A stretch of 62,672 nucleotides of DNA, the filler included, from Choristocarpus tenellus KU-1152 (lineage: Eukaryota > Protista > Phaeophyceae), in NCBI GenBank assembly GCA_964200185.2. It is 8 parts of 8 records of this genome, joined end to end, with 100 filler letters (N's around TTAATTAATTAA, not from the genome) between each part and the next. Parts side by side here need not be neighbours in the genome. Positions count along the whole stretch, not along the records: positions 23,510 to 37,012 come from CAXNAD020001469.1; 7 more parts are not named here. One strand, 5' to 3'. Every line of letters begins with the position of its first letter. Position 1 is the stretch's first letter. The notes below the pieces were generated by a model that ran no database searches, was not told where the DNA came from, and saw only the letters and a program-made list of their open reading frames with translations. Shown here in pieces: positions 2,740 to 37,112 of this stretch. The position numbers and the translations under genes were made by a program.

Positions 2740-2777
2740 GGCCACAGCATGGCTCAGGCTCAGGCTCAGGCTCAGGG
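2740..2777. repeat. (CTCAGG)n hexamer repeat
   Basis: ggctcaggctcaggctcaggctcagg visible directly. Confidence 0.7.
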
Positions 2778-4722: not shown

Positions 4723-4769
4723 CATCCTCAATGAAAAGCTCCATCCTCAATTTTTTAAATCGGCTGTTA
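4723..4769. repeat. Dispersed repeat with paired CATCCTCAAT boxes
   Basis: Near-identical reverse-complement copy at 39915-39961. Confidence 0.75.
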
Positions 4770-5647
4770 TTGCTAGGTTGCTTGGGTGTAAAATTTTCGC
4801 GGTTGGCGCTGTTACTCATCACTACAATTTAGTTTACACAGGCAACCCCATCCAAATTATTTCAAGGAAGGAAAGATATCCATTAATTAGGCACCGATGC
4901 TACATGCATATCATAGATGTAGTGATTAATTGTACCATCGCAATTTCGCGGAAATAAATATTCGAAAGGAACACGGAATGGTGTGTGTCGATTACAGGGA
5001 GTGAAATCATGTGGGGAATGGCACACACAATTACGTATTAACAAATGACTGCAAACAGAGGTTGGGCTCATAGAGCACAATTTCGCATCTTGTACTGTGC
5101 AGCGTTTTGAAGCACATCACCACATTAAATGAAACCTCTAGTCTCTCACTACATGCTACCTACAATGTTGCATTATCAGTGGGTGAACCCTCAATAAAAA
5201 GATGGAATGATTTACTAGGAATTATCCATATATTACTAGCTTTGATTTACCCAAAACGAACGTGTGATGAGGACAGCATTTCCTTCCCCATGGAGAAGTG
5301 ACTATGATGACAACCTGGCAACCTTGAAGATAAGAAAAAAATAATGAAAAATATTATATTATGCTGCAAAGTGCACGCCACATCAAGCGAACTTACAGTC
5401 ATCTCTCTAGGTTCCTATATTTGTTTTCCTAATAGATACGTATCAGCAGGTTGTGCCTGCCAGTCAGCTAATTCTCTGCCGTAAAGCCCTTTCGTGAAAT
5501 GGGTATACACGCAAAAGGAAAATACATATTAATAGCAAATAAAACCGTAACACACAGATGGTACAAAGAAGCAGATACATGTGGCGAGTCCACCATGAAC
5601 ATGTCAAGGGTCTCATGGATTGGGATTTTGGAATGAGCATGCCTCAC

Positions 5648-9719: not shown

Positions 9720-9979
9720 GGGTCAAAGTATCTTTTAGAGGGTAGAGCCGCGTCCGTTTGGTGGCCAAAATTCAATGTTGTAATTCTGATGAAATTTTGG
9801 GTATTGTATTTGTTAGGAAGTGTCAATGTCCTTGTTCCGAACACACCCTTTCATAATGTATACATTTTACCTACTCCGAAACATTTTGGAGTAGGAAAAT
9901 GCCATAAAAAACCCATGCAAAGCCAAGCCCCAAACGGACAAACAGGGCAAAACTCGTACCCTCTAAGATACTTTCACTC
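9720..9979. mobile_element. MITE, family C
   Basis: GGGTCAAAGTATCTT..AGAGGGTA...TACCCTCTAAGATACTTTCACTC, TTT on both flanks; homologous to 1685-1932. Confidence 0.85.
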
Positions 9980-10581
9980 TTTGACATCCTTTTTTGATTC
10001 AAAACAGAAATACTGATCTATCGACTTCAACTCCTCGACCCTACTCTCTCGAATGGCTTTATGTTGGTGTCAATATGATTTTGTGATCCCTTTTAGAAAT
10101 GACGTACCCAATTCCACATGGATTGTGAGCCAACCATTCTTTTTCGTTTTACTTGAATCTGAACAGCATTATGACCATCTTGTCACTCAGAAAATAAACC
10201 ATTGCCTCATTCACTGGTTAATCGACCAGAAAGGCGTTAATTTGGTGTCTGATGCAATGTCCTTTCAGCAACGCACTTTGAAGAGACAAGTGATCGAATT
10301 AAAATAGAACCAAGTCTATGGTTCCCATACAATTGTTGATTCAATGACACCGATAATTCCCAACCATTCCCTCCAATCGGAAAGTCCATGCATGAAAATG
10401 GTGGAGATACGCTCAAAAGATGCGCAAACCTCAATTGATTGTTCCAGGGCAAAATGATGTGTCAAGTGAGCTTTATGATGGTGGTTTTTAATGGCACTGC
10501 TCTTGAGAGGGCTAGAGTCAATAAGGTAGAATTCAAAACCAGAAGGCCTTCTGGGCATTACTACTCCACACCTGCTCATTT

Positions 10582-10871
10582 TGAGTGATAGCACAAAGCA
10601 GTCTCACAGTACAATCAGCAAATATCCCCCCCAACTACGACCCAAACTAAGAGGGTAGGAGTTTTGCCCTATTTGTCCTTTCGGGACTTGGCTTCACACG
10701 TTTTTTTTTGTGTCAACACAGTTACCTAAAATGTATACGACTATGAGGTTTGTCCGGAGCAAGGATATTGATACTTGCTAACAAACACGATAGCCAAAAT
10801 GAATCAAAATTGCGACATTGGATTTATGACCCCAAATGGACTTGGCCCTACCCTCTTGAATGCTTTTATTC
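10582..10871. mobile_element. Degenerate inverted copy of MITE family C
   Basis: aagagggtaggagttttgccct...gcaaggatattgatacttgctaacaaac...ctaccctct matches the reverse complement of the 9720 copy. Confidence 0.65.
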
Positions 10872-11149
10872 TACCTTTATGCCTGACCCTTGCACAAGCA
10901 CAGCAACAGAGTCTCCCTGCTTCTGTGCAAGCTGGTTTTGGAGTACACAAATCACGTGTATGCTACTTCATGATACTCACGAGAATGTAGATATCTCATG
11001 GTGCATGGACATGACATCATACACACTACTACTATCATTCAAGATTAGCAACCCTTTGCCCCTTGCCTCGAAAACATGTAGCAATGGACACCTCGACTAT
11101 CTCTAGCCCAATAAGCCTCTTGAGAGATGGTGTGAGTAAAGGACAAGAT

Positions 11150-11800
11150 CCTAGCAAAAAACTGCCAATGCCTTGCTAGTAATAGCGGGTTCAGCCTACA
11201 CAATGTTTACATGCTTGTGGATTCTAAGCCAAACACTACAAACATCCTAGTCTGGTGGAGTTGACCGCACCATTTCAATGGGTGGGGAACATAGTTTGTA
11301 TATCAACAGTTTTACTAACATGAACAAAATGAACACGCCACATCCAGTCAAAGGGATGCACACCCATTGCCATCTCCCCTTGGGACCTACCTCATCCATC
11401 TTGGCATCTCTCTCAGAGCAAGGATTAGGGATTAGGGTTAGCTGCCTATGTAACATAACTGTCAATTGTTGTGAGTTGTTTGAGTCCATAGAACAAGTAC
11501 TTCCAAAATATGTGACCACCATTGGTCCAGACATGGCCTTAACATCACACAAAATTTTATGGACTTCAACCATTGTTACAGTATGTACACCGAGCTCTGC
11601 TTGTTCTACTTGCCTTGTAACCAAGATGTGGAATCAACTGCAGGTTGCAGTATGAACCAAAACCCCCATCAGACATGGACATCAGACTGAACACATCTGC
11701 AGATGCTAGGACATCATACCCTCAACAAGATCTTGCCCGGGAAGAAATATTTGAAACTCTTTGTTAGACCATGATTCCACCTTCAACTGTGGTACCATTT
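11150..11800 (-). mobile_element. Highly decayed Copia RT/RNase H remnant
   Basis: VHKILCDVKAMSGPMVVTYFG resembles the Copia KRILxYxKGT..LxY motif; many stops. Confidence 0.35.
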
Positions 11801-12575
11801 TGCACGGCCTAACAATCCCACTAGACCATCAAAATGTCCTGGCCAATGAAATGTGCAGTAATCCCTCACAAAAAGCAGCCCCGCACTACCAAGGCATTGC
11901 AGAATCCGAGGCCTAGTACTGTTGGTAGAGCAAGTTATGTAAGCCAAAATTCTAATACTATTCTTCTTTTTTTTTCTGTCCATGTTGTTTCACCTCTCCT
12001 CCACAACGAATCCCCAACAGCAACAAGTTTGTCCGCGATCACCTCTCCTCCTAGTCACTACTCCCACGAAACAACAGATTCATAAAAGCCAAAGTGCCTA
12101 TTTAACATCAGGCCTCCTCTTCTTGGGGCTGTGTAGCCCCTCCTTGTTCCTCTGAGCATGAACCTTCAACTTGCACTCCACCCACACCAACAAATTCTAC
12201 TCCCCCATCGAATGCTGGCTCTGGTTCTGGTTCACTGCACCAAGCTGTGCCCTGGAATATTGGGGTAGACCGGCACTATGATTATGTACGTAATATGTCA
12301 AGCTAAGTAATGTTGCAACAAAGGTGTCACTGCAGCAGTAAGAGTTAGGGATAGTGATAGTTGGACACATTTTTGCCCAAAATGTGACATAGATGCTCTG
12401 CTCTTTAATTCCTGGCTATGTCATGGCATAATGCTTTTCTTGTCACCCCATGCTATGGAGACACTCCCTTTCCCTTTTTTTTTCCATTTCCCCCCACAAC
12501 TTTGCATTAGAGATAGAGCTAGTGTCAAGGCAGACAAAAGGAAATGAGGGTGTCTCCTAAGAATGAGAGTGATAA

Positions 12576-15500
12576 CTAAAGCATTACAACGTGGACACTT
12601 GCGTGAACACAATAGGAGAACCGCATGATGTTGCCAAGGGGTAAAAGTGCTCGACAGACATTATACTTACCCTGGTAAGTTAGGTCTTTGTTCAAGATAG
12701 GCAGGAAACTAGGTAACTTATTGCCCCCCTCAGCACATGAGATGCTCAAACTTGTACTATGTAGACTATCGGTGGCACTTAAGGTATTTCCCGCCGCCAC
12801 GGCAGATGAACAGTACAACAGAACTGGATGCTCCTGCGGGAGTACAGGAGTACACAAAGCACATATGGTCTCTTGGAGACACCAAAAGAAGAAGTAGGGC
12901 GGCTGCCGAAGAGCAACTCTCTTGTTTTACTCCAACACATCAAGTACAAATGTATAGGTAGACTCTCACCTCAATGTGATGGTGCATCAGGGCTACAACA
13001 TCGTACAAACTGTGGGCTACAATTGGGACCAAGAGATCACCGGACAGAAGCAACAGCAGGTGGAAGTATGCCCCACACAGGGCAGCCACCACTGAATAAG
13101 CCACTGTTGCTGGGTGCAGTATCTGCAACCAATCCATATGTAGTGACAATGATTGAGGTAGGGGCGTGCGAAAGGGCAGTGGGGGAAAAAGAAAGGCCGA
13201 TCGTGGCCAGATCGGGCAGATACATGAGAGCACCAAGAAAGGCCGATCAGGCTAAACAAGCAGGATAAGCTCTTGGAGACAAGGTGTTGTTTGGTAAGTA
13301 AGTTCAGTACAGGAAAAGGATCATGCCTCACCCCAAAGATTGTGCTGCAAATGGCCACGATTCCTGCTGTAGGAATCATCTTGGCCTTCAACATGATGAA
13401 CATTGGGAGGAGGCCACGGAATGTGCACTCCTCAAGGAAACCGATCACTGCTCCCAATGCAATAGATGCAGGCAACACCTGCCACAGCTGATGTCCCCAT
13501 TGTTGTGATTAAGGATATAGGATTTAGTTGACCTGTTGCTTTGAGATATGAATTAGTGTGGGCCAACCATCACTGAGAGGATGCGAGGGTGTGTGTCAGG
13601 CACATGTTTGGAAAAACAATAAGAATACCCCTACCCTTCACTGTTACATGTCTAACCAAGAAATTATATTCTCTGCCAAGTGTACAACTTGAACATTGTC
13701 GGACACACTCAAATGGAGTCTCGGTGCCAACTGATGGCTATGGACTACATATACCTTGCACTCATGCTCCTGACTTATGTCTTCTAGGTACACTACACTG
13801 CAACTGTTGAGCTTGAATACTCTCAAAGACACCTACATGAAGCATGGTCAAAAGGACACCCAGAAAACGATGGTATTGAATGCCTGAAGCCTTCTCAAAA
13901 ATATTAACAACTTCCCTTTTCAGGTGAGGTGCTTCCTTGAGAAATGAATCGACTTACACTCCTACCAAACCACAATAAAAGTAGTTCATATTTCCACATC
14001 CCAAACTTGTAATGGTTTTCACTCAAGGGAAAAAAACACTTCTCTCTCGCCCCAAATCAGATAGAATAGCAAGGAGTGCATTAAAAAATCACAGTGGAAA
14101 GGCGACTGTTATTCAAGTCATCTCGTTTGTGGCTCGCATGAGGGGAGAGGCAATTCCAAGAAATGTTCATGGTAGGATTTGTATCTACATACAGTCCTCA
14201 GCAAGTGTTAGAGACAGTTGTTTGTATTGTGGTACTCAGTCTCCATCTCATGGAACCAACTAGAGACATAGTAATGGCACCATTCCCAGAAATATATTAA
14301 AAAAATCATTTTGGCAACCTTCGAGGCTCAAAGTATCTGGGCCCATTTCTCCATGTCGCGATTTTTGGGTGATTTGGTTGCATGTGCCGGATGGATAATG
14401 TAAGTGCATTTTTCCTGGTCAGGGCCCAAATGGACACCCTGGTGTAGTCCTCCCCCCCCCCCACATACTTTGAGCCTGGATTGAACATTGTGTATTCAGC
14501 AAACTATCAGTAAGGATTAAAAAAGCATATCTGCCAATCCTACACTTTATCGCTACAGAAAACGTATTTGGTCCCAATCATTGATCATTGCACACACCTT
14601 GACATTGCACGTTCATGAGAGTATATCCTCCAATTACAGTACTCTAAAGCGGTTGTGATTGGACGATAGTGGAGGGAGTCAGAAGGCTGTGGAAAGATGG
14701 TTGTACGCAGGCTCCACCCACCCCTGTCGCATCTCCCACTACATTATAACAAAGGACAACAAAGAGGGCGCCAATACAAATACTGTCACCCAACCAGAAT
14801 ATTCGTCATAGCTCTTCTTTGATTGTTCCACAATAACTTTCACCGTATTGGACAAAGGTTAATTTTCCTCCCCATTAGCTCCAGATGTCAACGAAATAGA
14901 AAACCACACCTTAACACTTCCCTATATCCAAAACATTTTTCTCCTCACCAGTCGTTTACTTCCAAAGAGCAAAAGAGTAGCCTCACGGGTGGAGGCATTC
15001 ATGCGCTCAACCCAGTCCCACTTTGTTTTGTCCAGTACGAGCCCCAGAGCCATGGGAGGAAGGCATGATACAGCACCTAACAGGACCCCCCGTAAAGAAA
15101 CATGTAGAGCTGACCATAGCTGAGCCCCTGCCGCGCAGTGATGCCGAGGTTGGAGGGCATAACCATAGTTGGTCGCACACAGCAAGGACTCGAAGTTCAT
15201 GAGGAAGACATTTCAAAGGTGAGTGAATAACAACCTTGATCAGTATTGGGTATTCGAGTCTCCCTCATCAACGTGCTCGCCACCCCTTACATCATTCGAC
15301 CTTTCTTACAACTAACAGATAAACCCTGTCATCGATCCATCCTCTACAACAGGCACTTACTGAGCGTAGCTCCGGCCGCAGCCAAAGAAACTGCAAGAAT
15401 GGCAGCTTGCACAATAGGGGTGCCTATAACGAAACTCCAATCCACCCCTGGGGTGTAATCGCTTCGATGTCCGATCTGCAAAAGCGGTCGGAATATTTTT

Positions 15501-15769
15501 GAGTTTCTGGAGGAGTCACTACTCTTCATATTGGTGACACCATCTTGGCGGGCTCGGACTTCCAGTTTTGGGAGGGGCAGTGTTGAGGCCTTTGGCAACG
15601 AGGTTTTAGTATAAGTGCTCGCCCAGGGCGATTGCGACCAACCCTGGTGTCCAGCTACAAGCTTGCTGGAAGTTGCAGGATTAAAGGCAAATGCTTCTGA
15701 TTCCTTGTGACTCCAGCAGGCACAGGCGGTAATCACAACCCGCGTGATGCCCACACCCGTCAATCTCAT
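12576..15769 (-). CDS. CPBP-family (CAAX protease / Abi) intramembrane metalloprotease, probably plastid-targeted
   Basis: Phase-compatible exons 15769-15361, 15127-14949, 13478-13332 and 13122-12970, then a last exon from about 12833 (3' end uncertain). Motifs EECTFRG, IFG|ILH and AHSLYD are present; signal-like N-terminus followed by SEA-FAF. Confidence 0.88.
14325..14476. mobile_element. MITE, family B (intronic)
   Basis: GGCTCAAAGTATCTGG...CCACATACTTTGAGCC; flanks TCGA/TGGA; inverse homologue at 30280-30454. Confidence 0.85.
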
Positions 15770-16068
15770 TGTTGTAGTGATTGGGTATGAGGTTGTTTTC
15801 AACAAAACGCCTCCTTGTTGCTGCTAGTAAATCCGTTTTTCAAAAACAACTCTTGTCAACATCAACGAGATTACAGTAGTAGTGTTGAAGGAGGCGGGAA
15901 ACCTTTCGATATGTGTGAGAGAGAAGGAAGGTGATTTCTCTTCCGATTCACGAATTCCCTTGCTGGAAACTGTGGGGCTGCCGATATCGGTAAGTAGTTC
16001 GTTGACCCCTCTGCGTGCGTTGAGTTGGGCAACCCATACTATCCACGACTGGTAATTTAGGCATCAAG
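15770..16068. promoter_or_regulatory. Probable bidirectional promoter
   Basis: 299 bp between divergent ATGs at 15769 (-) and 16069 (+). Confidence 0.55.
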
Positions 16069-19000
16069 ATGGTGTACTTGTCGAGGAAGGCCGAGGAGGA
16101 GAAACTTGAGGAGCTCGAGGCCATGCTGAAGGATGCAACCCAGGTGGACAAAACAGGTAAGTTGTTGCCGCCTTGTACCAGTCACTATATTTCCTGTTTC
16201 CATTGAAACATCAAACGAATCAATCAAGTCTCACCTAGGGGTTGGAACATACTCTCACATCTCTTGCATGGCAGAGGCATCATTCGCGTCTGAATTCTCA
16301 ACGCCAACAAGGGGATACGCCCATAATGAACGTGTCCGGGGCCAGCCTGGTGAGGTTCACTATCCCCAATCTCCAGCGGTGGAATGGACAGGCGATGTGA
16401 CCACCAAATTACATGTGTCGACCCCAAGCAGTTTCTCTCCCTATGGCCGGGGGGGGAAGCATAGGCGGCGGACCAGGACACGAGATGAAAATGTTGATTT
16501 TCAGCACCAACTTTCTTTGGATGAGGGCGAGTTGGCTGGTCTGAGGACCGAGCTAGCATCGGCTCGGTCGCAATTAGATCAAAAGGAGGTGATCATACGA
16601 TCCCTCCAGCGTCAACTCGACCAGGTGATTTCCGATGGGTTGGTCTGGGATTTCATGTTGTGCTCTTCCTTGAATGCTCCCTCAAGGAAGAATAGGTTCA
16701 TTTGTGTAATGTTGAGCTAATTGTGCAATGGAAGACACCTACTCCGTGCTAAATTGAGGATTTACGACTCCTTTTCCGCCTTGCTATTTACCTCGCCACT
16801 GCTCCTTTTGTCCATGCCCTCAGCGGGAGGTCGTTGATAGTCAGGCTCATGCACGAGCTGAGGAAGACTTAATTTCTGCCTTGGCAAGAGAATCCAGTCT
16901 GAGGGAGCAGCTGGCAGAAGCCTCCCAGTCATTGGTTGAAGAGGCAGTAGCAAGGTACATGTTTCTGTGACCAGTTATCACGTCAACAATAAATTTCACT
17001 TGAGGTAGAGTTGCAATACATGTGTCCCTGCTGGGACTGGTGGCCTGGATGCATAGTATCTAAGCTGATATCCTATGGGAGATAACGAAAAAGTGTGGAA
17101 TGTGCTTGTAGTGTGTGCATTTGCATGATTGGAGAACTGTATACATTGGTGCGTTCTTCCAAGAGCTGCCCAGTCTCTCCGAGCAGCAGAGTGAATGGTG
17201 ACATTTTTGTATGGTAGAGTTGATCTTGCACTGTGATCTCCAGAAATATGACGTAAAACAGTGCAATTCCCCTTAGCTCAACCATGTTTTTGCCCCTGCC
17301 CCTACTATGATCTGCTTGGTTGGGGTCACTCTACTGTTAATTGCAGGAAGAAGCTAGAAGAGAATTGTGCCTCCATCTCTGAGCATCTTTCAGTGGCAGG
17401 TTCTCAAAAGGCAACAGCAGATGTTGAGCTTGCTGACACCCGTGCTGAGCTTGCACGAGTCTTGGGAATGCTGCAATCTAGAAGGGGCACAGATGTGGTG
17501 GAAACAGAACTTGCTTTTGCCGAAGAGTTGAGACGCCTCCAGGAGGTTTCAGCACAAGAAACTGCTACCCTCAGGCACGAGGTCAGTGTGCTAAGGGCTG
17601 CTCAAGAAGAGAAGACAGCTGCCTTCCGAAGAGCTAGCGAGGAGAGGTAAGGGTGTCCAATGAAAGGGTGGGACAGTCTAAGACTTGAACCTGTGTAGTT
17701 CAGACTTAGACTGATTTCCTTGGATAGCACCCTGACGTGGGGACAGTGTCAACCTTTTTCCATCTGTGCTCTGCGTGTGCGAGAAGAGGGGTATAGTTTC
17801 CAGGGTTTTGTGCTTGGATTTCTGCTGGTTGATGTTGCTTTCTGTTGTTTTACAGGGATGCTTGGTGCAAGGAGGCCAATGCCCTGTCACTGGAGGTGCA
17901 CTCCCTCCAGGAAACAATCAGTGCGTTGAGGCAGTACAGTGAGAGCAGCACTATCGATCAGCTACTGCAGAAAGTGAGCGCTGTGAATGTAGTCACACCC
18001 ACCAAACTTCATTTGCAGCTCTCAGTCTCTTGATTGAACATGGTTTAATTCCTCACCCTCCTTTCTCAGTCAGTCACCTCTCGATTCCCACCCCATTTCC
18101 ATTTATTGACTTGAGTATAAAAGGTGGAAGGAGCTATGGGTAGATTGGCTGAACCTTCATTTTGTTTTTCGATTTGCCTACCCTCCTGTGACGAAGGTAT
18201 CACATTGGAAGGGCCGTGCCGAGGAGCTGGAGAGAAGTGGGGAAGGCTTAGTGACAGCCAGCCATCCTATTCTACAACAGGCTGCAGAAGATGAAAATGG
18301 AGAAAGTGGGGCTGTGACTCCCTACGACCAGGAAGGAGTTGTAGCAAGCATAGATTCTGTGACTGGAGAGTTGATGTCGGTTATTGGGCAATCTGAAAGG
18401 GTCAGTGGTGAGGAGGGGGTTACACACACAGGTCATGAAACGGATTACAAAGAAATTGCCTTGGAGGTGGCGAGGTTGGAACGTGCTCTGGCAGAGGAGA
18501 AGGAGGGGTTACTCATGGCCACAGAGGACAGGGTTGCTGGTTTGTTGATGCTGAGGGATGAGTCACAGAGGAGGCGCCTGGCAGAGGAGCGGTTGTGGGA
18601 TTTGGAGGTGAGGGATTAGGTTGAGTGACCTTAGTTGTTGGATGGATAATGTGTATTTCATTTGAAAACTGCACTCAAACAAGACAAATGAGGAAACAAT
18701 GCTATCGGATGCCAAGGCAAGGCCTGAACCTGCCTAAAGAATCAAATGGCACAATTCCATGCGAAACACGTAATCCTGATTTGGCTTGGTAGAGACATTT
18801 TTTTCTGTGAGCAAATTTTAGTACCCTAACTGATGATCTTATTAGTGCCGATTGTCTGAGCAGAGATCATCATTCTGTCCTTACGATAGTCAAAATTTTG
18901 CAGCCTAGGGAGATAAATCACTGCAAGTATTTGGTGTTGGTACCCAGCATCATCCGTACATTACGTATGACTCCATATGCTTGTGGCGTGCCAGAATTTT

Positions 19001-23389: not shown

Positions 23390-23601
23390 GGGCCAAAGTA
23401 TCTGGGGGGNNNNNNNNNNNNNNNNNNNNNNNNNNNNNNNNNNNNNNNNNNNNTTAATTAATTAANNNNNNNNNNNNNNNNNNNNNNNNNNNNNNNNNNN
23501 NNNNNNNNNCGGATTTGAAATGTAAGCAAAAAAAACGTTGTTTAACCGAAACGGCCGCCCCCTCCCAAACCCCCCCCCCCCCCCCCAAGATTCTTTGACC
23601 C
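23390..23601. mobile_element. MITE family A termini on both sides of a linker
   Basis: GGGCCAAAGTATCTGGGGG before the gap; 23510-23601 matches 3339-3427. The flanks do not match, so these may be two different copies. Confidence 0.75.
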
Positions 23602-24023
23602 ACCCCATATTCCTATCAACTCGTATTCAGGTTGACAATATTGCTGGCCCCATGCCTTCAGACCTTGACCATGAGCTTGTTGCGATGTTGACCACATCTC
23701 ATCAACTTCGCTCGTATTTAGGCCGACTGATATGCTGATCCCATACACTCAGACCCTGCAAGCTTGATTGGTATGATGACCACATACCATCAACCTTCGG
23801 CTAATGATATACTGATCACATATTCGTTAATATCAAGTTTATATGGTACACTTCATTTTGTATTCATGAAGTCGTGTAACATATTATTAGTGCAATAGTA
23901 TACTGACAGTCGTACCTTTTTCTCATATCGCTCCAGAGCTCACTTTTAGTTTGACCTCGAATGATGCTTACCTGACTTTGAGGTCTATCAGATGGGGGGG
24001 GTGATGTGGAAAGCAGGGTTGTC

Positions 24024-24617
24024 TGTTATCAAACCGATATTAGCGTATGCCATATACTTTTATACCAATTGAGTTTCCTTGTCAGAAGTCCTGTATTCCT
24101 GTGGAGGATATTTCGTGAGATTGAGGGGTGGAATCTTTTCAAGGACCAATCCCACAAGTAGTGGTTTGGCAAAGCAGGTTCGAGCTTTCCGATATTAGAG
24201 GAAGGGTTTGTTGCGATGATTAAGCGTAAATTAGGGGATGTGGATATCGATCATCATAATAAAAAAATGTCAGCAATTGCAAGAGATAGAGTGCAAAATC
24301 CACGAGCCGTGAAGGGTATTAGTAGAACTCGCAAGCATCATGTATTTTATTATGACCCAACTTATATTTTAAAAGAGGATGTAAAATTACCAGATGGCAA
24401 GATCGTGGATATCTCTTCAATCAGAGATGTAAAAAAAAAAATTATTTTGTTGTCTCGTGTTTACATTTCTGATGATCCCCCTCTCATGATTTTCTCCCCA
24501 CTCTGTAGTACCCTTAAGGTTCGTCTTGGTCTGTCTGGTCCGTTTTGCTTGATGATTCTCTTCATAATAACCCTTGGCTTAAGTGAATCATGCCGCCACA
24601 GAATCATATGATTCATA
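24024..24617. mobile_element. Degenerate solo LTR interrupted by a foreign 240-bp insert
   Basis: 24024-24164 and 24405-24617 align in order with the solo LTR at 38145-38532. Confidence 0.8.
24165..24404 (+). pseudogene. traW: Internal fragment resembling bacterial type-F conjugative transfer protein TraW
   Basis: 80 stop-free codons FGKAGSSFPILEEGFVAMIKRKL...RVQNPRAVKGI...FYYDPTYILKEDVKLPDGKI match the TraW pattern (G..FxIxE..I..RL..RVxxP..V.G..FYxDPT..L.xD...DGxI). Confidence 0.8.
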
Positions 24618-25668
24618 CTTTGTTCGTTTCTTTCTTTTCTTCTCCTTGTCTTTTTTGCGTGGTGGTGTTTTTGTGATGAGGGTTCTGATTCTTGATCATA
24701 ATTTCTTTCTTTTCTTCTCTTTTGCTTTCACTTCGTTATTTTTTTATCGTTGTTTCTTTTTTCAAGAACTGTGTATTGGCTCCACCACTTCTTAGATTAC
24801 AGTGTATCATTTTTTATTATTCTTGTTATCTTCTCACTCTTACTACTTTTCGATGAAGGGTATGGGTAGTAAAAGGTCCTTTATGGTAATAATGTTGATG
24901 ATGATAATAGGAAGTCTGAAACTTTTGCATTATCTCCACCTACTCACCTATCTCATAGGCCAATGACCACATAGAAGTGTAATACCACAGTATTTCATTC
25001 GCCTACCAATAACCATCACAACTAATTGAAGTACCCTTTGATTTTTTTACTGTAAGTAAGTGTTGGGTTCATTAATCTTACCACTGACGGTCATCCTCCT
25101 TCTTTGGATCTGACTCCGTTCCACAATGAATCTTCATCGCCAGTGTCCAGATTTGTGTTTGTGTTTAATTTTTCGGGTTTAGGGCACGATAGTAAGGTAC
25201 AGGTATACCTTCCCAATATACCCTTTCATATAATCCCTTAAAGACAATTTTTGGAGCAAAGAGTATCTGGTTCCTCACACTGTTGTGACAGAGTTGTGGG
25301 TGGGAAACCATTGAAGCTACAAAACTGACCTGGATAATCCCTTACACTACTATAAATATATGATGGATGATTAAAAAAATAATGAAAAAATGAAAAAAAG
25401 TGGTATTCATAATAGTATCTTCCTCACCTACTACTACTACTACTACTACTATGCTGTTGTCTCTTGTTTCTTGATATTTACCACCAAACTTGGACATTTA
25501 TAAATAATTCAATTTTCAAGTTTGGATGGAGAGAGTGGAGAGGCTTTATTGGAGAAATGATTTACACCTTTAAAACGGCAAGGTTCTTGAAAGAGATATA
25601 ATAGGAGTAGTCCTTTTCCTCACCTCTATCTCCATATTTCATGTTCCCAGCCCATGCAGCAATAGGGC

Positions 25669-27195
25669 ATGGAACCCCCTTCTCTTCGGACGCTATGTCT
25701 TCGAACGCTAAGGACATCCCTAGAGAAGGGTGTATGTCCCCCTCCCGACCTCGCTAGGGTCCCATTGGGTTTGTGCGAAGTTATATTCGACTTCTTGCTT
25801 TCATCTAAGCCACCAGGAGGGACCTCGAATCTGAGTTTACCAGGGAAGAGGAGATTTCTCCGCGGCTTCGGACCACACCTTTCGGACATCGTAGCTACAG
25901 TCGATCTGACGCCTGTTGGTGTAGCGCTCTCTGATAATGCTTTGCGAGAGATTGCCGAGTGCTGCTCATCTGGGCTGGAGGTGCTAAACGCCAACGGTTG
26001 CATGGGTATCAGTGATGAAGGCGTGCGAGCTCTGGCACGCAGTTGCCAGTCTCTGACCAGGCTTTCACTCTGCAATTGCCCTCTTCTTACGGATGAGGTG
26101 GGTAATGACCAAGTGAACTCTCTGGAGGGATGTACCTTGAAGAATTTGGAAGTTCTCGTTGTATCGCAAGGTCATGTTCAGATGAAGAAACAATTCTCCT
26201 CCCCTTTCAGCACTGCAGATGCGAAAGATTGACCCCGTGATTGATATCCCCACTTGAAAATCGCTTTTTCACAGGCCACCTCTTATCTAGGCGGGACTCA
26301 AAGCCTGACTGCGCTCAACCTAGCTGGAACTCCTAGGCTAACCGGAGTCGGTGCCGCTCGTCTCATCACGACCCTACCAGTGCTCGAAAGACTCAGTCTT
26401 GCACGTTGCTCCCTAGTAGGTGATGAAGTATTCTTCGCTCTAGCTGCTAACAATGGACGTGGACGCAGAAGGACAAACTTGCGCTGGCTGGACCTTTCAG
26501 GAACGGGGGTCACTGAGGCGGGCGCATGTGCTGGCCTGGGAAGGGGAAGCTTGCCTCCCCCGCCACAGCTTGAGTACCTCAGCCTTTCAGGAACCAAAGT
26601 AGGAAGGAGGCTAATAGCTACCCTGGCTCGCGAGATCGGCCTCCCCGCTGCCCTGCCCGACGCACCCAAGACCGTGGCTCGTTCCAACCGGACCTTGCTG
26701 GAGGGCGTGAATTGGTCGAAACCGTTAATAAAGTCTGCGAATATAGGGTCGGGTCGTCGACACCGCCGTAGCAGCAGTGTGTACATTTCTATGCCGTCGC
26801 CTTCCCGCGTAGGAGTTGGGCTTCGAGGGGATGATGAGGATGGTCATAGTGGTGGCAATGTCGGGAACGAGTCGACTCAGGGTCCTGCATTTTTGTCTTC
26901 AGTGCTAGAAGAGATAGTTGGGATGTGGGGACATGCTCCAAACCCGCCTCCTCCTTCAAGTAAGGGAGCGGCTACAAGACTGGTGTCCATGGCTGGGAGG
27001 GGAGCCCATGCCAAGCTTACAAGGGATAATTTCTTGTTTCCACTTACACCCATGGTGTTGAGAAAGAAGAGAAGATCGATGGTCCTAGACAATCTGGTGG
27101 TACCCACGTTGACAGGTACAGTTGCAGGAGTACGGGAGCGTAGAAGTAGAGAGAGCCAACAGGGGAGGACTCATAAGCGCAGGAAATCCTGCTGA
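25669..27195 (+). CDS. RNI-like leucine-rich-repeat protein (AMN1/FBXL-type), 2 exons
   Basis: Exons 25669-26097 and 26275-27195 join in frame; repeats LEVLNANGCMGISDEG, LTRLSLCNCPLLTDE, LERLSLARCSLVGDE, LRWLDLSGTGVT. Confidence 0.9.
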
Positions 27196-30100
27196 AATGT
27201 TTCATATTTGTGTGGTTGGAGGTGACAACAAATTATTGTTCGGCACCTGGGTTCGTTTAGAGAATTTTTCAAAGGATTGGATGTGCATTTGGTTTGTTTT
27301 AGAGAAGCAAGGATGAGAGGGAAGATCACCTGCCTTGTGCATTTTGTATTTTATGTGCTGGGTCTATGCATCGTGACTTGCACAGTGAAGAATGGGGGCC
27401 TGAGCCCTTTTTTTCTATGAATTGGCAAATTATTTTGCACTACTGTACTGTGGTAGTTTGACACAGAGTGATTGGATTCTTCCTCTTGCAGCATTCACCC
27501 CATGTCATCCATCTCTGAACTTGTTGAATTTATGTTTCTTGCTGAAAAAAAAACAAACTTCTGTTGGTCAGCAATTTTTGCAAACCTTGGAATTTCTTAC
27601 TTTGCTCACTCTTGGCACTCAACACCTACCTCAGTGGACACTTGAAATCAATATTTGTGAGGCAGTTGTGGATGTGTGCAAGAATGGTTTGTGAGTTCAA
27701 CAGTACATGTATTTTTTTAGCAAAGATCTGAGACCTCTCCCCAGTTTGTGGCAGCAGTAAATGACTTTGCTCTTACACAAGATATCAACATCTGCTGATA
27801 CTTTGTTGGCATACGTTTCACATGAAGATTCTCAGTTCCAGTCTCTTTGTGCTACAACAGTCCTCATCAAGCGCAAATAGCCTGCTATATGGCACTCCAG
27901 GCCTACTGGCGCAACCAAGAGCTACTTCCCAGTGAGGCACTACTTCCCCAAACATCACTTACCGGTCAACTTTTGAGTGCAAGATAGAGCCAATGTTTTT
28001 GTCTTTACATTCATTACTTGTCAAACATGGCAGAGCAAGCATCAAGAATTTCTCTTAGGTACCTGGTACGCCAGTATGGAACATGTGGAATCTGTTTTGG
28101 GACTGTTCATGGTAGCTGTTGCCTTTCACTCCCCTCCTAACCTGGTGTGTAAGTGCTTGCTGTGACCATTCCCACATTGTCTGCAGGTTCTCTTGTTGGA
28201 GAACACCTACTCTTGGTGATATTTTTGCACTGCCCGTTTAAAATTCACGGGTCAACAACTCCCTCCAGTAGATGCATTATTCTCTCCACAAACACACCAC
28301 GAATGGCAAACTCCTTCCCATCACAGCCTACTATAGAAATCTCCACTTGTTTTTAGAGTAACATTCCTGCGACAGTTGAGACATGGTCGCAATTTAAAAC
28401 TAAGAAAAAGCAGTGGAGGAAGAAAACAAAAAATGGATAGAGAATTAACGCTCGTTTATCTTGGTGGGATGTTGGCTTACCCCCGTTTTTCGTTTGTTTT
28501 TCATTATTTGTGAAAGAATTGAGATTTCTCGCTGAAATTGTTTGAATTCAAGTATCAAATTTCGAATGTACCTGTTGTTGATATCTTGAGAAAATATGGG
28601 AGACTCGTACATCACAAAAAATGTTTTAGCCTATTTCTTCTATTCGAATATTTCTGTCCTTGTTTGTCGTCACTTCACCTAATACAATAAAGTAAGAGTA
28701 TAAATAACTTGATATATTATATTTAACAGGAGTATGTATTTCTGAAGACTGTTGCTACTGCTTCTACTATTACTACATTTCTAACATAAATATAAATATC
28801 AGTTGCAGGTTCGAAAAATTGTCTACACACAAATCAAGACTCTCGTTTCCTGATAAATGACATCCTACCAGATATATTCTTATAGTACTATCAAGGTCGA
28901 AAAGGTACAGTTGAAATTTCGATTTTTTGTTTTGGTGACTGTATATACCTTAGATTGTAATTTTGAAGCTTTTAGTAGTATATCTAGTATTCAAATGGTA
29001 AACAGATTTTTAGAGAGAGATTTTTCGCATTTACGACAACGGTTACTCTTACAGGGGTCCTTGTCATATTGGTTTGGCTTTTTTACTGACACGACTGTAA
29101 AATGTCACACCCACACAGTGTGTAAACTTCTCTTTAGGAAGATAATCTTGTATCTCCTTTTTTCCTGTACAGTGATGTGTATTACCTTCTTCAAACTATC
29201 TTTCAACGAACGGTCTGACCATAGATTAATGTGAAGAAAAACAAAGAAAAAAGGGTTCTTCATCTCCATGGAATCACAAAATCATGGCAATTAAGGTGGA
29301 ATTCAGTGTATTACTGTCTGTCCGTTCAGAAGTTGGACTCCAAGTGCATGCTATGCGTATTTCTACCGTTAATTTTTTTCTTTGCGACGCAGAGTGGAGT
29401 TTTGTGGGGGGTGTGGGTGGAATTGGCGTTTATTGTAGGTGTTTTTCCCCAATTTCTACATACAACACTCCATACCTCTACTGATCAATATATATATATA
29501 TATTAAAATCGGTTTATACCAATCCTTCCAACGTACTTTGTCCCATGATCGCGAGGTTTGTATTGTGTTAAGAAAATGCTAGGGTTAGGGATAGGGTTAG
29601 ATTTTGTTTTACCTGTACTGTATGCGAACAATACTTAGTACATGTATTTATGTTATTTTGATATATTTTTCTAAATATCAAACTACTAATATTATGCAAT
29701 ATGTTGACCTTCACAACCATGAGCTTGCTCTCCCTCCACCACAGGACATCCAGATCTTCCATGCGTACGAGTTAATACACCTCAAAGTTGTTATCATGAG
29801 ATGTGACTGGACAAATGATACCTCCAAGTCATTTGTTTCTTACTGGTGAGTTTGGATTAATTTGATTTGGTAAAGAAAGAAGAAACAGACTCTTTATTGA
29901 ACTTACATTTCTCTGAAAGAGTACGTGATGTTCGTTGATTGTGTTGATTACTCTTTTTTCCCCCTTTAATTAAAAAGGTGTTTCTACTACCTTGTCTTGA
30001 TTTGTTGTTAGGGGGAAGATGGGGTTGACTCTCTGACTAATCAAAGGTATTGTTCGATCGGACTGAGAACTTGTTTTGGGGTTGGCCTGTGTCTGACTTT

Positions 30101-30279
30101 TCTCTCACATGCGAGTTCCTTGAAAAGTAAGGTTTGAGGAAACAGAAAGGAATGTTGTTGAAGATATTCTAATAATAATAAAAAAATAGAATGAGAAATT
30201 GGTAACCCACATCTATCCATATATGGAAAGTAGTAGTATATTTAAGAATATGTTACTATTTATACTAGTGTTAAAATAT

Positions 30280-30454
30280 GACTCAAAGTATCTGGAGGGG
30301 GAGGTCTACACCAGGGTGTCCATTCGGGCCCTGACCAGGAGAATTGAATTTAAATTATCCATCCGACACATACAACCAAATCACACAAAAATTGCGACAT
30401 GGAAAAATGGTCCCCGAGTGGACAGCCGCCACCCCCCCCCGGACACTTTGAGCC
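30280..30454. mobile_element. MITE, family B (reverse orientation)
   Basis: GACTCAAAGTATCTGG...CCGGACACTTTGAGCC, TAT on both flanks; interior is the reverse complement of the 14325 copy. Confidence 0.85.
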
Positions 30455-33400
30455 TATAGTAGACCCCAACAAAGTTTGATTTGGTATATTTGGGGTAAAT
30501 TGTTGCTTTGTGGTATCGTTTTTATGTTATTCGGTATATTCTAGGCTGATCTTTCTATTTGTAATGTTTTAACCCTAAGCAAAGTCAATGTGTGAATGGA
30601 ATTTTGTCACATGTCTATGGGCTGATTCGTGCTTTTTTGCTGTTGCCAATTCAAATAGAACTGACGACGTCCTGTGGCGAAGGGATATCAGAAAACGCGT
30701 TGATGGCCATCAGCCCACCTCAAACACAAAGTTAGCCAGACCAATTGAAAGGTAAGCAATTTTGGTCCCTTTTGCATTCTAACTATTTTTTTTACCTTGT
30801 GCAATACACTCTATTTCCATTGCTTTATGTCCAAAATAGTGTGCACAAGATAGATATTCCCCCTCTCCGCACATAAAGGGACACTATCACCACAATTATG
30901 CCATGCTTCTTTCTGCAATAGTAGAAAATGGCTTGTTTTGTCCTTTCTTGAGATGGTTAAAATGCAACCTTGCCCACCTCTCAATTGGTTTGACTCTTTC
31001 TATTAAATCACTTTATTCGTGTTATATCCCAAAAACTTAAAACATACTTCTGCGCACTTCCTGAGACCTAAATTTCTTGACTTTCGATCATCACCTTGTG
31101 ATTTTGACCTATTGCTCCACCAACCCACCAAGGTACGCTTTATGCAAGGACTCGGGTTGAGACATACTCTCTCTGTTGTAGAAGCAAAAGGTATGATAAG
31201 GGGTGAGGAGGTTGTGCTCTCTCTGGTGGCTCGATTTCTTCTGGCTCTGATGAAGTTGTTGTATTGTACTGGCATGTTGTATGTGTAGAGGTTTCGGTGG
31301 TCACAAGAAAAAGAAGAGTGAGTTGAAATAGTCTCTTTAATACTTCGGGCTTGCCTTCTTCCTTCATACTCCCTCTCTTACGATATACTTGACCAAGGAC
31401 GGATCCCCACATATTATTCTCACCATACTAGAAGAAGTCCAGGTCAACAAATGATTCGTGTATTCTGTATTTTGTGGAACATATTAGAGTTCTGGATGAT
31501 CATTATTTTTCACCCATCCTAATCACCCTACTATATCCCCTCTTCTACGACCCTATGGATAATTCTAGGGCACGTCTTGAGGTAGTGTGTACCTTACTGA
31601 ATGTTATCATGTCAAGTTCGCCTGTTACACTACTCCAACAATATGGCACAACGACAGGTACCAGATTCCGAAATTCGACACGACACATCATGATCTTCCA
31701 ACCACGTCGTTTTTAACCGCAACAACAGTAAATTCCAACTCACTCAATCCTTTCATTTGATTTCTGCTACTACACCCTGATATAAACTTCTTCCCCAAAA
31801 CCCCAACCAACCATCTTAAGAATTTGGTTCCCACAGTGAGTGAGATACGAAAAATATATCCGAGATTCAAATTAAGATCGTTGGCCCATGCTGACGATCA
31901 CGGAATTCCAACGCACCTCACCCCCTCGTTCCGTACACGACACTCTGCTCCCATAACAAGGGAGGATCAACCCGCCAATTTGTTGTGGCTTGACTCAGTC
32001 AGGCGTACTACCTTAGGGTTGAAGTATTCTCAAGGAAGTAGAGGAATCTTGTTTTGTTTTTGTTTGTTCAACCTTATCTTGTTTGAAATTAGTTTTTTGC
32101 TTTGCTCTGGTTTGGCGACCTAATATACTCATTCGCAGGTAGATTTGTTTGCCACTAAAGGAAGAAATTGTATTCTTAGGTAGATATCACGGGATTTACC
32201 GTTTTACTTGTACGCTGTACTATATACTGGTCAGGCAAGAAATCCGATGGAAATTTTCACTTTATTTGCACCCAGCACGCTCAACGACCAAAGTTGGTTA
32301 GCATTCTCTGGTCGTAATAATTGTTCCTAGTACGATAATTCCCTTTCGATCCGCTAGGACTGCAGGTGGTTGGAATTTGTAGACAAATCGTCCCCATGAA
32401 AACTACTTTTACAACCTACTTCCTGCCACTTGGAACAACTAACGTGAGTGTGTCATTTACGGTCTATGTAGGCACATGTGTCTATGGACTTCCCTTCAAA
32501 GACCCTCAAGGCGAGTGGAGAATGTTAGTGATGTGAGGTGCAGGATTCACACTATAGCCAACACATCCAGAAGATGTGTGGTCTTGGCTCTAGTTTTTTG
32601 TTACTCTATTCGCTTCTGTTCCTCTGACGAACATGTGTGAAGATACTCTTTTCTCTCTTTTGGGCGTCCATTTCTTCCTCCCTACACCTTATGCTGCCAT
32701 CATCTCCGTAAATCTTATCAAACACAATTACATCCATCTACAGAATTGCACGACTTTACACGAACATGTTGCAACAATGTGGTTGAGCGATAATCAGGTT
32801 CACATTAAATAATTATGTGTTTTACTTGCAAAATGGATCATAACAATACCCTGAAGTAATAGGGTTGTGCAGGGCGTAACACTACTGTGCATGGGTAACA
32901 GGGGGGAGCTGCACTGATGGGGAAAGAAGAGGAGAACTTCTGTCAGATAGGTAGTAATTAGTCAATGTGCTCCACCAGCAACAAGAGGAAAAGAACAGCA
33001 GTAGGGTGTGCCTCTGGGTAAGTCCATTGGGGTTCAGCTGGAGGAACAAAATAGAGCGAGAACACCCGTCACTAGGCAGCTACTATACACAAGCAAGACC
33101 AAGAGGAAAGGCAAAGGGGGGGGCTGTGTAGTCTGTGCCCTGTGAGGGGAGGGAAGTAAGAGAAGCTCCACTTTCTAATAGCTACGATGCTCCAGCAGCA
33201 CAAGGACGAAAGGTAAAGCGGGCGAGGGCTGTGCCAGGGTAGAAGGAAGGAATGGACTATGTCTTGGGAGATCTGGGCCTTCCTGTCCTTGAAAAAGTTC
33301 ATGGTCGAGCAAATATTACATTAAGTGTATAATAGCTGTGGCGTATGTGCGGAATTTGATCTTCAAGTGGCTAACAGGGAATTCCTAAATTCTAAATAGT

Positions 33401-34158
33401 AGTAACTGAAAGCATAGACCAGGGCCACGGCAAGAAGAAAAAAAACACTCTGGGCCAGCTATCCCCTCCATACAATGTTTGAACGAAACACGACTTTTTG
33501 GACTACAGATAGAAGGTAACGGGGGTGGACCTGACGCTACTTCTAATTTCCCCTGGTTCGTGTCTACTGGTGGTAGGTACCGAGATCTTGACATTTTATT
33601 AAATGGAATGTGTAGCAATGAGAAGAGTGGTGCCGCTATTCCATAGTTTCTCCAATTGAACATCTGAAACAGCAATAGTAACTCCTTAGCGGTAACTATT
33701 ATTGAACATAAAATGATCCCCCCCACTGTATGTATGTAGGTGGTAATATCTGAGTGTCAAAGCAGTGTGCACCACCACACAACATGAAGAAAACATCGCC
33801 AGCCATATACTCAATCTAATTGACTAATAATGGACAAATGGTCAGTGCAACATTTTATTTTGTGGTGTGTTTGACATCAAGTGGGAATGGTCTTTCAGCG
33901 CGTCATGAGAGGGGATTCCTAGGACGTCTGCCCTAGGGTGCCCAGTGTGCCTAAGGGGGCGGAATCGCGATGGAAATCTCAACCAACATGGAAAACTGTG
34001 GAGGCTCCACTATATCGTCCATACCGTACATATGTATCGGAAGGGAGTGATGTAGGATGGGTGGTAGTTGAATAACAAATAGATTATAGAAAAATATCTT
34101 TAACATTTTCGATAACTGTTACTTTTATAGTGGTTCTTATGATATTGAGTTGGCTTTT

Positions 34159-34362
34159 CCCCTGACACATTTGGAAATTTCAGAGGGCATAAAAATAAGA
34201 ATTTCATACATATTATTATTATGAACTCTGACATATCGTAGTGTGACATTTTTTTCAAACATGTCGTAACGTCTACCGTACAATTTGTCTATTTGTCTAA
34301 CCGTAGGCCGTATTATATATATTATTATCCCCTCTGACATTTGGAGATTTATGTGTCAGGGG
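34159..34362. mobile_element. MITE with long CCCCTGACACAT TIRs (family D)
   Basis: CCCCTGACACATTTGGAAATTTCAGAGGG...CCCTCTGACATTTGGAGATTTATGTGTCAGGGG; single termini also at 38614 and 49667. Confidence 0.8.
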
Positions 34363-34579
34363 AGGGAGAAGGTCAAAATGTAGGCTGTGCATAACAAAAA
34401 CTTGAAAATATCAGCATGGCCACTTTCAAAATAATTATTTTAAAGAAATTAATTGAACTATACAAGGTGCCCTTAGAGAATGTTCCTTATGAACCAATGT
34501 TCATACTTCTATGGCTACAGCCTAGCTCTACGAAGGTCGGCGAGGAGCGAGGGGAGAACCCAGGAGTCTGTAAGTCCCC

Positions 34580-34920
34580 TGTGTGCCCACAAACCAGGTG
34601 TCTCAAGGTTGAAATGCATCACCTTTCTCAAAACAGCAACCTGTGCGGTTACAGATACAACTTGTCTCAAGTGGATCTCGACAGCTCCTTTTTGAGTGTA
34701 TTCCCTAGACCTCCTTCCCCTACCAAATAGATGGGCAGCCAACTCATCCAGGAAGCTCTCGGATTGTGTACTGAGGCGCCCAAAGCTTTCTAACTGCGAA
34801 ATCGAGACCAAAACTACTATAATCAAAATATCCCTGATAGTGGGTACACTGTCGTGCCTCAGCTGCCACCACAACAATGAAATACGTTCAAAACACAGCA
34901 TTATGTGGATAGTCACTGCA
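34580..34920 (-). mobile_element. 3' remnant of a CRE-like non-LTR retrotransposon (RLE-domain C-terminus)
   Basis: ESFGRLSTQSESFLDELAAHLFG...KGAVEIHLRQVVSVTAQVAVLRKV. Confidence 0.7.
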
Positions 34921-35559
34921 TCGCATCAGCTTCCATAGGGTTTTTGCCACAGATTCAATTAATTGAACAAAACAATCAACACTGTTAATAAGTAATTCCC
35001 ACACCAAGTGAAGTTGAAGGCATACCTTTGTTGTGATACTCTCTGTATCATCACATCGCCAATCTCTACTGTTTCAATCTACCTCACCCCCTCACTCCAT
35101 GCACATTGCTTCCATATCAACGGAGGGTCAACCTGTTTGTTCGTTTTGGTCTGACTCGGGTATACTTCCAGAGGATTAAAACGATTTTGTGGAATTAGAA
35201 GTTTTGTTTTCTTTTTGTTCTACCCAACCTAGTAGAAGTGATGACCCTCTGTCATTTATTTCCTTCACATTATTTGCAGTCTTATCATTTATAGTTTGTA
35301 TTGAACTTCAATAACAATTATTCCAAGGTAGAATAAAAAATACAGTCACATACAATATTTACCATATTCTTACTGAAAATTTATTTTCTGTACTGTTTTT
35401 TTGTAAACTATTGACTGCACTATATATAGAGGTGTATGTTCTGACGGAGGCATAATGTCGACACTCGACATGCTCGTACCTGCAATAGGGCAGTGGGACA
35501 GATACACGCGCACATGCCGATGGTTAAGCTTCTAGGTCAACTCTGCAAGGGAATGGCCA

Positions 35560-36252
35560 TCCCTTTGCACTATGGAAGATGATATCCCATTCACAGCGGA
35601 TTGAAACTTCCACATGGATGTGGTCTTCCATCCTGGGGTACCTGTGGAAGCTGGATCGGCTCTCTACCAAAACAAAGGTCTCCTCTTGGATGTTGAGTTT
35701 GCAGAAGTGCAAGTAGCCTTCCATCTGCCACACTCATCCACCAGCAATAGCGTAGCTTCTGTTGCAGTTGGGGCGTGAAAGCAGACCCACTACAATGGGT
35801 CTCTCGACCCTCGCAATTTTAACCTTAACACCTTTGCAGTGGAAATTTTTGGGTGCCTCGGTGAGCAAGCCGAAAGTTTTCTGGATGAGTTGGCTACACA
35901 TACATTGGGTGCGAGAGGGGTGGGAGGTTTTAGCAGGAGGAAGGGATAGTCAAATCCCGTTTATGAATAATAGTGTTCGTCACAACACAAGTGGCTCTCT
36001 CGAGATGCGTCATGCGTTTCAAGCTAGAGACACGAGGCAGATGGACTACAAGGGGCCTGTCAGATTCTTGGGATGCTTTCCAACTCCTCAGGCACTGATA
36101 TAGGGCTAATCTAGGTTAGAGGCATAGCAGCAAATGTGCACATAACATTATAATTACCAATCTTCAAGGGAGTGTTGTAGTATAGTTAGTATTAAAATAG
36201 AAAATAGTTTTTGGAGAGACATTGTTCATTTACGACAACTGTTACTTTTACA
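35560..36252 (+). mobile_element. 3' remnant of a CRE-like non-LTR retrotransposon with 3' tail
   Basis: MDVVFHPG..KGLLLDV..KQTHY..FAVEIFGCLGEQAESFLDELATH..VTTQVALSR across frameshifts; tail shared with 28970-29053 and 34060-34129. Confidence 0.7.
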
Positions 36253-37112
36253 AAATGTAGGGATGATCTCAAATCCATGTGTAATATATATATTTTGACT
36301 ATGATACCCACCTTCGACCTAAGTTATACCTTAAAAGTGCCCTTCCTCTAGATAAAATATATACCTCAATGTCTATCGTCATTTGACATGAGCATTTCCT
36401 TCCTGATCACTTTAATATCGGGTTGTTTGAGTGGGGCGTACAACTCCCCCCATTCCCTTTTCCTTTTTTACTCCTTTCCTTTGTGACCTGGCGAGGGTTG
36501 CTCACCATCCTGCCTTCTCTCTATCCTTTCTGTTCCTCCTGTATTCTTGTTGGAACGTTCAATGTCAAGAACTCGCGTACAGATTTCCAATTAATTGTTT
36601 AAATAGATTCCTCAATTATTAAAAAAAATGAATATACTGAAGAGTTAGAAAACTTCTCGATATTTGATGTGAGTATCAAATACATTAATTAAGATATCAA
36701 AATGACTGATATTGGATGTTTGATTTTGGTTTGATATTGGACGTCAAAAATGACGAAATTTCGCCCCCTCTCATCTCCATTATTAGCAGAAGAGACGTAT
36801 ACTGCTCTCCTTTCATACAATGCAGGAACAACCTTAGATCATTAGCCATGCGAGTACAAGAGGGTCATGTGTGATGCAAAGCACACATTATAGTAGTATT
36901 AGATTTTCAGAGTAAATGATATATATATATATTATGCTTAACTTGTGTCACTATCGGATGGGGTGTATACAGCCAGTAAACAGGGGATCCTCAAAATTGA
37001 GGAAGGCGCGGGNNNNNNNNNNNNNNNNNNNNNNNNNNNNNNNNNNNNNNNNNNNNTTAATTAATTAANNNNNNNNNNNNNNNNNNNNNNNNNNNNNNNN
37101 NNNNNNNNNNNN

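Follow-up and report, generated by a model that had tools for sequence, protein, structure and literature searches.

How does a piece of a bacterial conjugation gene come to lie inside a repeat of a brown alga? The question is raised by 240 nucleotides in the genome of Choristocarpus tenellus, a species that branched off early among the brown algae and was sequenced by the Phaeoexplorer project (10.1101/2024.02.19.579948). The window is the whole stretch of DNA under analysis, 62,672 nucleotides long, and the piece studied here is its interval 23510-37012, which is record CAXNAD020001469.1 of assembly GCA_964200185.2 (13,503 bp). All positions are window coordinates, unless they are given on L002, a bacterial contig presented below. 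The features of interest are, in order:

23510..24160, unstranded: left part of the host repeat, a repeat mosaic cut by the contig end (word depth, TRF)
24161..24164, unstranded: left GTGG copy (empty copies of the repeat hold a single GTGG)
24165..24404, plus strand: insert from a bacterial traW gene (TIGR02743 profile, tblastn, blastn to L002)
24405..24408, unstranded: right GTGG copy (loose end after 24404 in metagenome run X4)
24409..24715, unstranded: host repeat to the right of the insert, its tail CT-rich and of low complexity (word depth, TRF)
25669..27195, plus strand: spliced gene for an LRR or F-box-LRR-like protein of 449 amino acids, the sole annotated gene and the nuclear anchor

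The insert translates into 80 codons without a stop and has a GC content of 37.5%. The initial annotation, which reported 240 bp, 80 stop-free codons, about 37% GC and a GTGG on each side, has its positions and counts right to the base. A TAG at positions 24159-24161 shuts the frame immediately upstream; downstream, the frame stays open into the repeat for 68 further codons, to position 24611. The probability that a stop-free run of 80 codons appears by chance, in random sequence with the base composition of the insert, is about 0.0013.

The peptide is recognizably TraW, as had been proposed from its pattern. It matches the NCBIfam profile TIGR02743 (TraW, F-type) with an E-value of 2.1e-11 and a score of 43.9 bits, at positions 22-105 of the 202 positions of the profile, and it matches PRK13738 with an E-value of 3.3e-8. 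The TIGR02743 score lies far below the curated equivalog cut-off of 174.75, which applies to full-length proteins, because only part of the protein is present: the peptide corresponds to residues 24-103, counted on the 215-residue TraW of Ca. Megaira, of F-type TraW proteins that are 206-215 amino acids long. This is 39% of the gene, and it includes neither the start codon, nor the signal peptide, nor the C-terminal half. A Pfam search of the peptide returned no family, and Pfam apparently has no matching TraW model.

When compared by tblastn to 72,556 plasmids, the peptide matches 86 records, the best of which, with an E-value of 2e-20, is an annotated TraW on a Ca. Megaira plasmid. In this search, the best named protein is the TraW of Ca. 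Megaira from Mesostigma viride, with 56% amino acid identity to the insert, followed by Ca. Megaera polyxenophila with 55%, Rickettsia plasmids with 42-47%, and sphingomonads and gammaproteobacteria near 30%. An exhaustive phmmer search of 1.8 billion representative proteins yields 125 matches, none above 56% over the full fragment, and the full-length proteins retrieved from these matches are TraW-like. Scans of genome and metagenome contigs for the exact peptide, with the 80-residue fragment as query, found no relative.

One protein stands much closer to the insert than any other. P0126, retrieved with the whole open frame as query in a search limited to the TraW part, is a TraW of 206 amino acids that shares 89% of its residues with the insert; all other TraW proteins are at most about 58% identical to it. 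P0126 is encoded on L002 (DRR496536_62795), a contig of 18,707 bp with 35% GC and a word depth of 385, from the algal metagenome run DRR496536, or X4. Interval 8186-8425 of L002 aligns by blastn with 24165-24404 at 94.2% nucleotide identity, with 14 differences over 240 nucleotides, and this is the only blastn match between L002 and 23510-37012. The likeness ends sharply, at 24164/24165 on the left and at 24404/24405 on the right: beyond the right end the donor-like gene reads ATAT, unlike the host. Set on the window as a Logan contig of X4, the same 18,707-bp contig matches 24183-24404 with 8 mismatches, and continues at both ends with sequence unlike the window.

On L002, the donor-like traW lies between traC and traU, in a cluster that holds traE, K, B, C, W, U, N, F, H, G and D, is collinear with plasmid pMegNEIS296, and encodes proteins that are 27-70% identical to those of the Megaira plasmid. 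The other 20 of the 21 proteins of the cluster have no tblastn match in 23510-37012, and the insert sits outside any tra operon: there is no neighbouring traC, traU or trbC in that interval. The insert is of bacterial origin. The core of the initial annotation, tra DNA of Rickettsiales type inserted in a host repeat, is supported here by a bacterial counterpart with 94.2% nucleotide identity within an intact tra operon. L002 had no megablast match among the plasmids, and a search for literature on DRR496536 found none. The contig has its own irregularities: traN is broken into two ORFs at L002:9787-10925, and the gene order of the Megaira plasmid is short here of trbC and of two other genes, so that the tra cluster of L002 may itself be decaying.

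We now turn to the DNA that surrounds the insert. In C. tenellus run X1, word depth ranges from 650 to 15,000 over 23510-24160, against 23 for unique sequence, and this left part of the repeat shows many variant contigs and joints. Over 24409-24715, depth ranges from 730 to 18,689, then drops to 48 and to 23; single-copy DNA begins at about 24716. The target of the insertion, a putative solo LTR in the initial annotation, is shown to be a dispersed high-copy repeat. It goes beyond the contig end at 23510, no hallmark of an LTR was seen, and 23510-37012 holds no reverse transcriptase or integrase ORF. Close to the contig end, a C17 homopolymer at 23570-23586 drew short matches from unrelated metagenome runs.

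Other copies of the repeat tell what the site looks like when it is empty. At least six contigs of repeat copies join 24138-24164 straight to 24405-24446, with no insert in between, and each has one GTGG or one variant of GTGG. Since empty copies hold one GTGG, the locus reads as an uninterrupted repeat to which 240 bp of traW and a second GTGG have been added. The claim that removing the insert restores a continuous repeat is therefore verified on read contigs that run across the site with a single GTGG. Occurrence of the insert in many copies of the repeat, which the initial annotation would have taken as a sign of amplification by the element, is not what these copies show: all of those seen across the site, at least six, are without it. 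The empty sites are all paralogous, and no orthologous empty allele was seen in the runs examined. As a candidate for such an allele, X3, from organism B of the same study, was rejected, its coverage (11 of 30 bins) being too sparse. X3 contributes exact 151-nucleotide contigs with a depth of about 4, at 24512-24662, 24725-24875 and 26726-26993, which look like cross-sample carry-over and not a shared locus.

A rival reading is that of an assembly artefact, in which a contaminant bacterial read or contig was wrongly spliced into an algal contig. The assembly is indeed fragmented, this contig ends in a repeat, and the extra depth described below suggests that a bacterium bearing traW may be present in the culture. 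The reads, however, speak for a true junction. X1 and X2 are C. tenellus runs from two samples, whose Logan contigs were set on the window; they may be the assembly's own data, in which case their support is that of an independent assembler and not of independent DNA. On single contigs, the unique part of the record has a depth of 23.3 in X1 and about 6.6 in X2. The left junction is crossed by record 4 of X1, which has a depth of 18.2 and agrees with 24001-24251 at every position. The right junction is crossed by record 11 of X2, which covers 24274-24884, with 131 nucleotides on one side and 480 on the other, and has no mismatch in the 480-nucleotide flank. Record 8 of X1, whose depth is 23.3, matches 24375-27500 without a mismatch and connects the right edge of the insert with the LRR gene; it extends leftward over only 30 bases of the insert, one under the bridging rule.

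A different assembler thus recovers both junctions, in two samples and at single-copy depth, and the insert is physically linked to algal DNA on both sides. The initial annotation had asked for reads that span both junctions, and these independently built contigs provide them. Moreover, a chimera would not create a precise 4-bp duplication between two halves of a repeat, a duplication that is missing in the empty copies, and 14 substitutions separate the insert from its closest bacterial counterpart. An artefact is, in our opinion, very improbable.

The host side of the link is algal. The spliced LRR gene lies 1.3 kb from the insert, at 2160-3686 of CAXNAD020001469.1; a product of 449 amino acids encoded over 1,527 bp implies splicing. 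P0135, labelled Choristocarpus tenellus, is 99% identical to this product, and the next relative is a protein of Discosporangium, at 42%. The traW fragment carries no gene annotation on the record, and a search of 23510-37012 against Rfam gave no match.

A few other observations were made on the same contig. Three islands at 32960-33260, 34460-34760 and 35510-35960 have a GC content of 0.49-0.53 that resembles the exons of the annotated gene, and fall in a stretch with no annotated gene. An inverted repeat of 78 nucleotides, 74% complementary, joins 34713-34790 to 35842-35919, 1,051 nucleotides apart; around it lie two GC-rich ORFs on opposite strands, at 34515-34916 (minus) and 35762-36103 (plus), neither with a Pfam match. 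This could be an inverted duplication, or the remnant of a DNA transposon. Three direct repeats of 39 nucleotides, with 72-82% identity, at 29015-29053, 34091-34129 and 36214-36252, may belong to a small dispersed element.

Given these data, the reading that we favour, with a probability of roughly 0.85, is that the insert is a non-functional fragment of a traW gene of Rickettsiaceae type, captured in a dispersed nuclear repeat during the repair of a double-strand break. The scenario would unfold as follows. An F-type conjugative element, either a plasmid or RAGE-like, would be the donor, and its DNA would come from a bacterium living inside the alga or tightly associated with it. A stray fragment of this DNA would have been caught at a double-strand break within the repeat. 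The 4-bp duplication of GTGG would result from the filling-in of a break staggered by 4 nucleotides; alternatively, a short templated insertion by alternative end joining could have produced it. Transposon ends are absent from the insert, which shows no homology to its target. Joining by microhomology was considered and rejected: donor and target have GTAG in common on the left and ATAT on the right, but both are out of register with the junctions.

How old is the capture? The insert diverges by 5.8% from its nearest living bacterial copy, and the divergence among copies of the host repeat is about 14%, as in record 5 of X1 with 23 differences at 160 positions. The insertion is thus younger than the repeat, and we infer that the capture was recent. 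A young insertion had already been proposed, on the argument that the frame is intact inside a decayed repeat. For a young age, the 94% identity is the sounder argument, and the intact frame is not informative: after 14 random substitutions, the frame is still open in 51% of simulations (P = 0.51), and an open frame therefore says nothing on function.

The same simulations weigh on the idea that the fragment has been domesticated, as the ORF 24216-24611 (131 amino acids) or as an exon under selection, and now serves as a TraW-derived algal protein. What invites this idea is the open frame itself, with its 80 stop-free codons and the 68 more that extend into the repeat. Nevertheless, a TAG stands directly upstream, the fragment is devoid of a start and a signal peptide and holds only half of the fold, it is not annotated as a gene, and runs of the same organism contain a frameshifted variant. 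In addition, no homologous short protein (44-140 amino acids) for the 80-residue fragment was found in 5.8 billion sequences. By exact look-up, neither the product of ORF 24216-24608 nor that of the host ORF 25669-26229 is on record. Domestication thus appears extremely unlikely. With the start, the signal peptide, the C-terminal half and the operon partners missing, the fragment must be inactive as TraW.

The dN/dS ratio between the insert and the donor-like gene is 0.45, obtained from 5 synonymous and 9 nonsynonymous changes, 14 differences that do not make it significant; over the same segment, two functional Megaira genes show 5 synonymous and 2 nonsynonymous changes. These values fit a relaxed constraint along part of the path that separates the two sequences, though with too few changes to establish it. 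Comparing by eye the eight amino acid differences with an alignment of other TraW proteins, we find that most fall in variable columns that are uninformative for direction; amino acid positions 50 and 52 suggest a change on the bacterial side.

Which bacterium gave the fragment? A maximum-likelihood tree built on 51 TraW sequences pairs the insert with P0126 (support 100/99), and a clade of 45 rows (98/89) contains this pair together with Megaira and Rickettsia; Midichloriaceae, Sphingobium and Acinetobacter fall outside. The TraC protein of the donor-like cluster is 47% identical to Megaira, 47% to Rickettsia and 27% to sphingomonads. A scan of GTDB species representatives with the TraW alignment detects 33 loci, none with more than 55% identity, 23 of them labelled Rickettsiaceae (Rickettsia, Ca. 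Megaera, Ca. Tisiphia) and 5 more labelled Rickettsiales. In a second tree, with labelled sequences, the pair formed by the insert and P0126 (support 99) also stands apart from Yersinia, joins Tisiphia, Rickettsia and two unnamed sequences (SH-aLRT 94), and lies outside the well-supported clade of Megaira plasmids. The Megaera rows are polyphyletic, scattered over the labelled tree as is expected of a mobile cluster, and the tree of a mobile gene consequently cannot name the donor genus.

Together, these comparisons support a conjugative element of Rickettsiaceae type as the donor. The initial annotation pointed to Rickettsiales, and at the level of the family this holds, by tblastn, by TraC and by both trees. 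As for its more precise suggestion of Ca. Megaira, the pair is outside the Megaira-plasmid clade and TraC is at equal distance (47%) from Megaira and Rickettsia, so that Ca. Megaira as donor is no more than a reasonable guess. As a side remark on the labels, contig JAHDGB010000017.1 (L022) belongs to a MAG labelled Flavobacteriaceae, and its TraW groups with a Rickettsiaceae single-cell genome (SH-aLRT 99); it is probably a mis-binned contig.

One set of data complicates this picture. In X1, the summed depth of words reaches 84-101 over the insert and 23.3 in the unique flank, which puts the insert at about four times the depth of a single copy. The excess, noted in runs X1 and X2, spans 24180-24447, and contig ends are nested within it, near 24294 and at 24404. 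One nucleotide is deleted at 24204 in a frameshifted variant, which has a depth of 30.8 in X1 and is the sole form in X2; at 24221, a C has a depth of 74.3 in X1, against 18.2 for the T of the window. At 24283, 24322 and 24332 the window differs from every X1 and X2 contig that was set on it, and at the first two of these positions the reads match the bacterial sequence; the 3.1 kb flank is identical to the window. The three mismatches may come from a consensus that mixes near-identical copies. Finally, a unitig of depth 40.6 covers 24264-24404, begins at the branch near 24294, and stops exactly at 24404, so that a second continuation must exist. The depths imply nested sets of copies, of which about four have 24222-24293 in common, about two extend to 24404, and a single one enters the host flank described here. 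At about four times the single-copy depth, more copies of traW-like sequence exist in the sample, nuclear or bacterial.

These extra copies open the possibility that the insert is a secondary copy, either taken from a larger nuclear block of bacterial DNA by templated patch repair, or captured once and then amplified with the repeat. The depth of the insert, the deletion at 24204, the C at 24221 and the second continuation after 24404 are all what such a history would leave behind. On the other hand, the repeat copies that cross the site with no insert limit amplification with the repeat to a minor role at most, and the absence of mismatches in the 480-nucleotide flank of record 11 of X2 indicates the same locus. 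The depth is also explained equally well if a bacterium resident in the culture has several tra clusters, part of them degraded: multiple or broken tra copies are common in Rickettsiaceae, and 3 of the GTDB TraW loci have internal stops. We consider a secondary copy unlikely, and a direct capture during break repair is still the reading that we retain.

As for the extra depth itself, we tentatively suggest, with somewhat less than even odds, that it comes from an undescribed bacterium of the Rickettsiaceae that lives in the culture and has several tra clusters, or from further nuclear integrations. If true, brown algae would have their first documented transfer of DNA from endosymbiont to nucleus for which the donor lineage is in hand, and the question would arise whether DNA from conjugative elements reaches host nuclei preferentially. 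A resident bacterium would, for its part, be the donor caught in the act.

Resolved to the base, the locus is evidence for a recent uptake of DNA from a bacterium of the Rickettsia family into the nucleus of an early-diverging brown alga. A search of the literature found no paper that links Choristocarpus, or nuclear inserts of brown algae, with Rickettsiales. Surveys of gene transfer in brown algae use annotated genes (10.1101/2024.02.19.579948), and would miss the insert for that reason. The fragment can also serve as a cheap marker, with which to look for the bacterium in cultures or in wild samples and to date the association.

It remains to compare the locus with known systems. In NUMTs and NUPTs, short foreign DNA is patched into double-strand breaks by non-homologous end joining. 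Our insert is similar in that its ends have little or no homology and that it is non-coding after insertion; it differs in its source, a bacterium and not an organelle, and in its 4-bp direct duplication, which is atypical of blunt end joining.

Transfers from Wolbachia to the nuclear genomes of arthropods and nematodes (PMC5541319) offer a second parallel: there, as here, fragments of endosymbiont DNA decay neutrally as fossils in host chromosomes, often in repeats. The host kingdom and the bacterial family are different, our insert is at the very small end of the size range, and neither function nor large-scale integration is shown here.

Closer still is the nuclear genome of Volvox carteri, which holds about 9 kb of rickettsial sequences in four gene-like regions (2015, PMC4324946). 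In both cases, DNA of a Rickettsiaceae endosymbiont is found in an algal nucleus, the bacterium itself is absent from the strain or the assembly, and its nearest bacterial relative lives in a different algal host. Volvox is a green alga with about 9 kb and four regions, whereas we have 240 bp of a single conjugation gene in a brown alga, a stramenopile. Here, unlike in Volvox, the site of insertion is known to the nucleotide, bears a 4-bp duplication, and is found empty in paralogous copies of the repeat.

On the bacterial side, the TraW proteins of Rickettsiaceae (pMegNEIS296, pRA1 and RAGE-type elements) are homologous to the insert at profile positions 22-105, and the donor-like gene is, like theirs, flanked by traC and traU. 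The window copy, in contrast, is 39% of a gene with no operon, and the best named TraW is only 56% identical to it. That Rickettsiaceae do accompany brown algae is known from MegNdeciBESST, a Megaira-related Rickettsiaceae genome found in the genome project of the brown alga Nemacystus decipiens (Davison et al. 2023, PMC10132079). Its source material was likewise Japanese, and its divergence is large enough for a new genus; it is, however, a bacterial genome and not a nuclear insert. Ours is a small dead fragment, of a kind already well known in insects, nematodes and Volvox; what is new is a host group in which such a transfer had not been described, with the donor lineage in hand.
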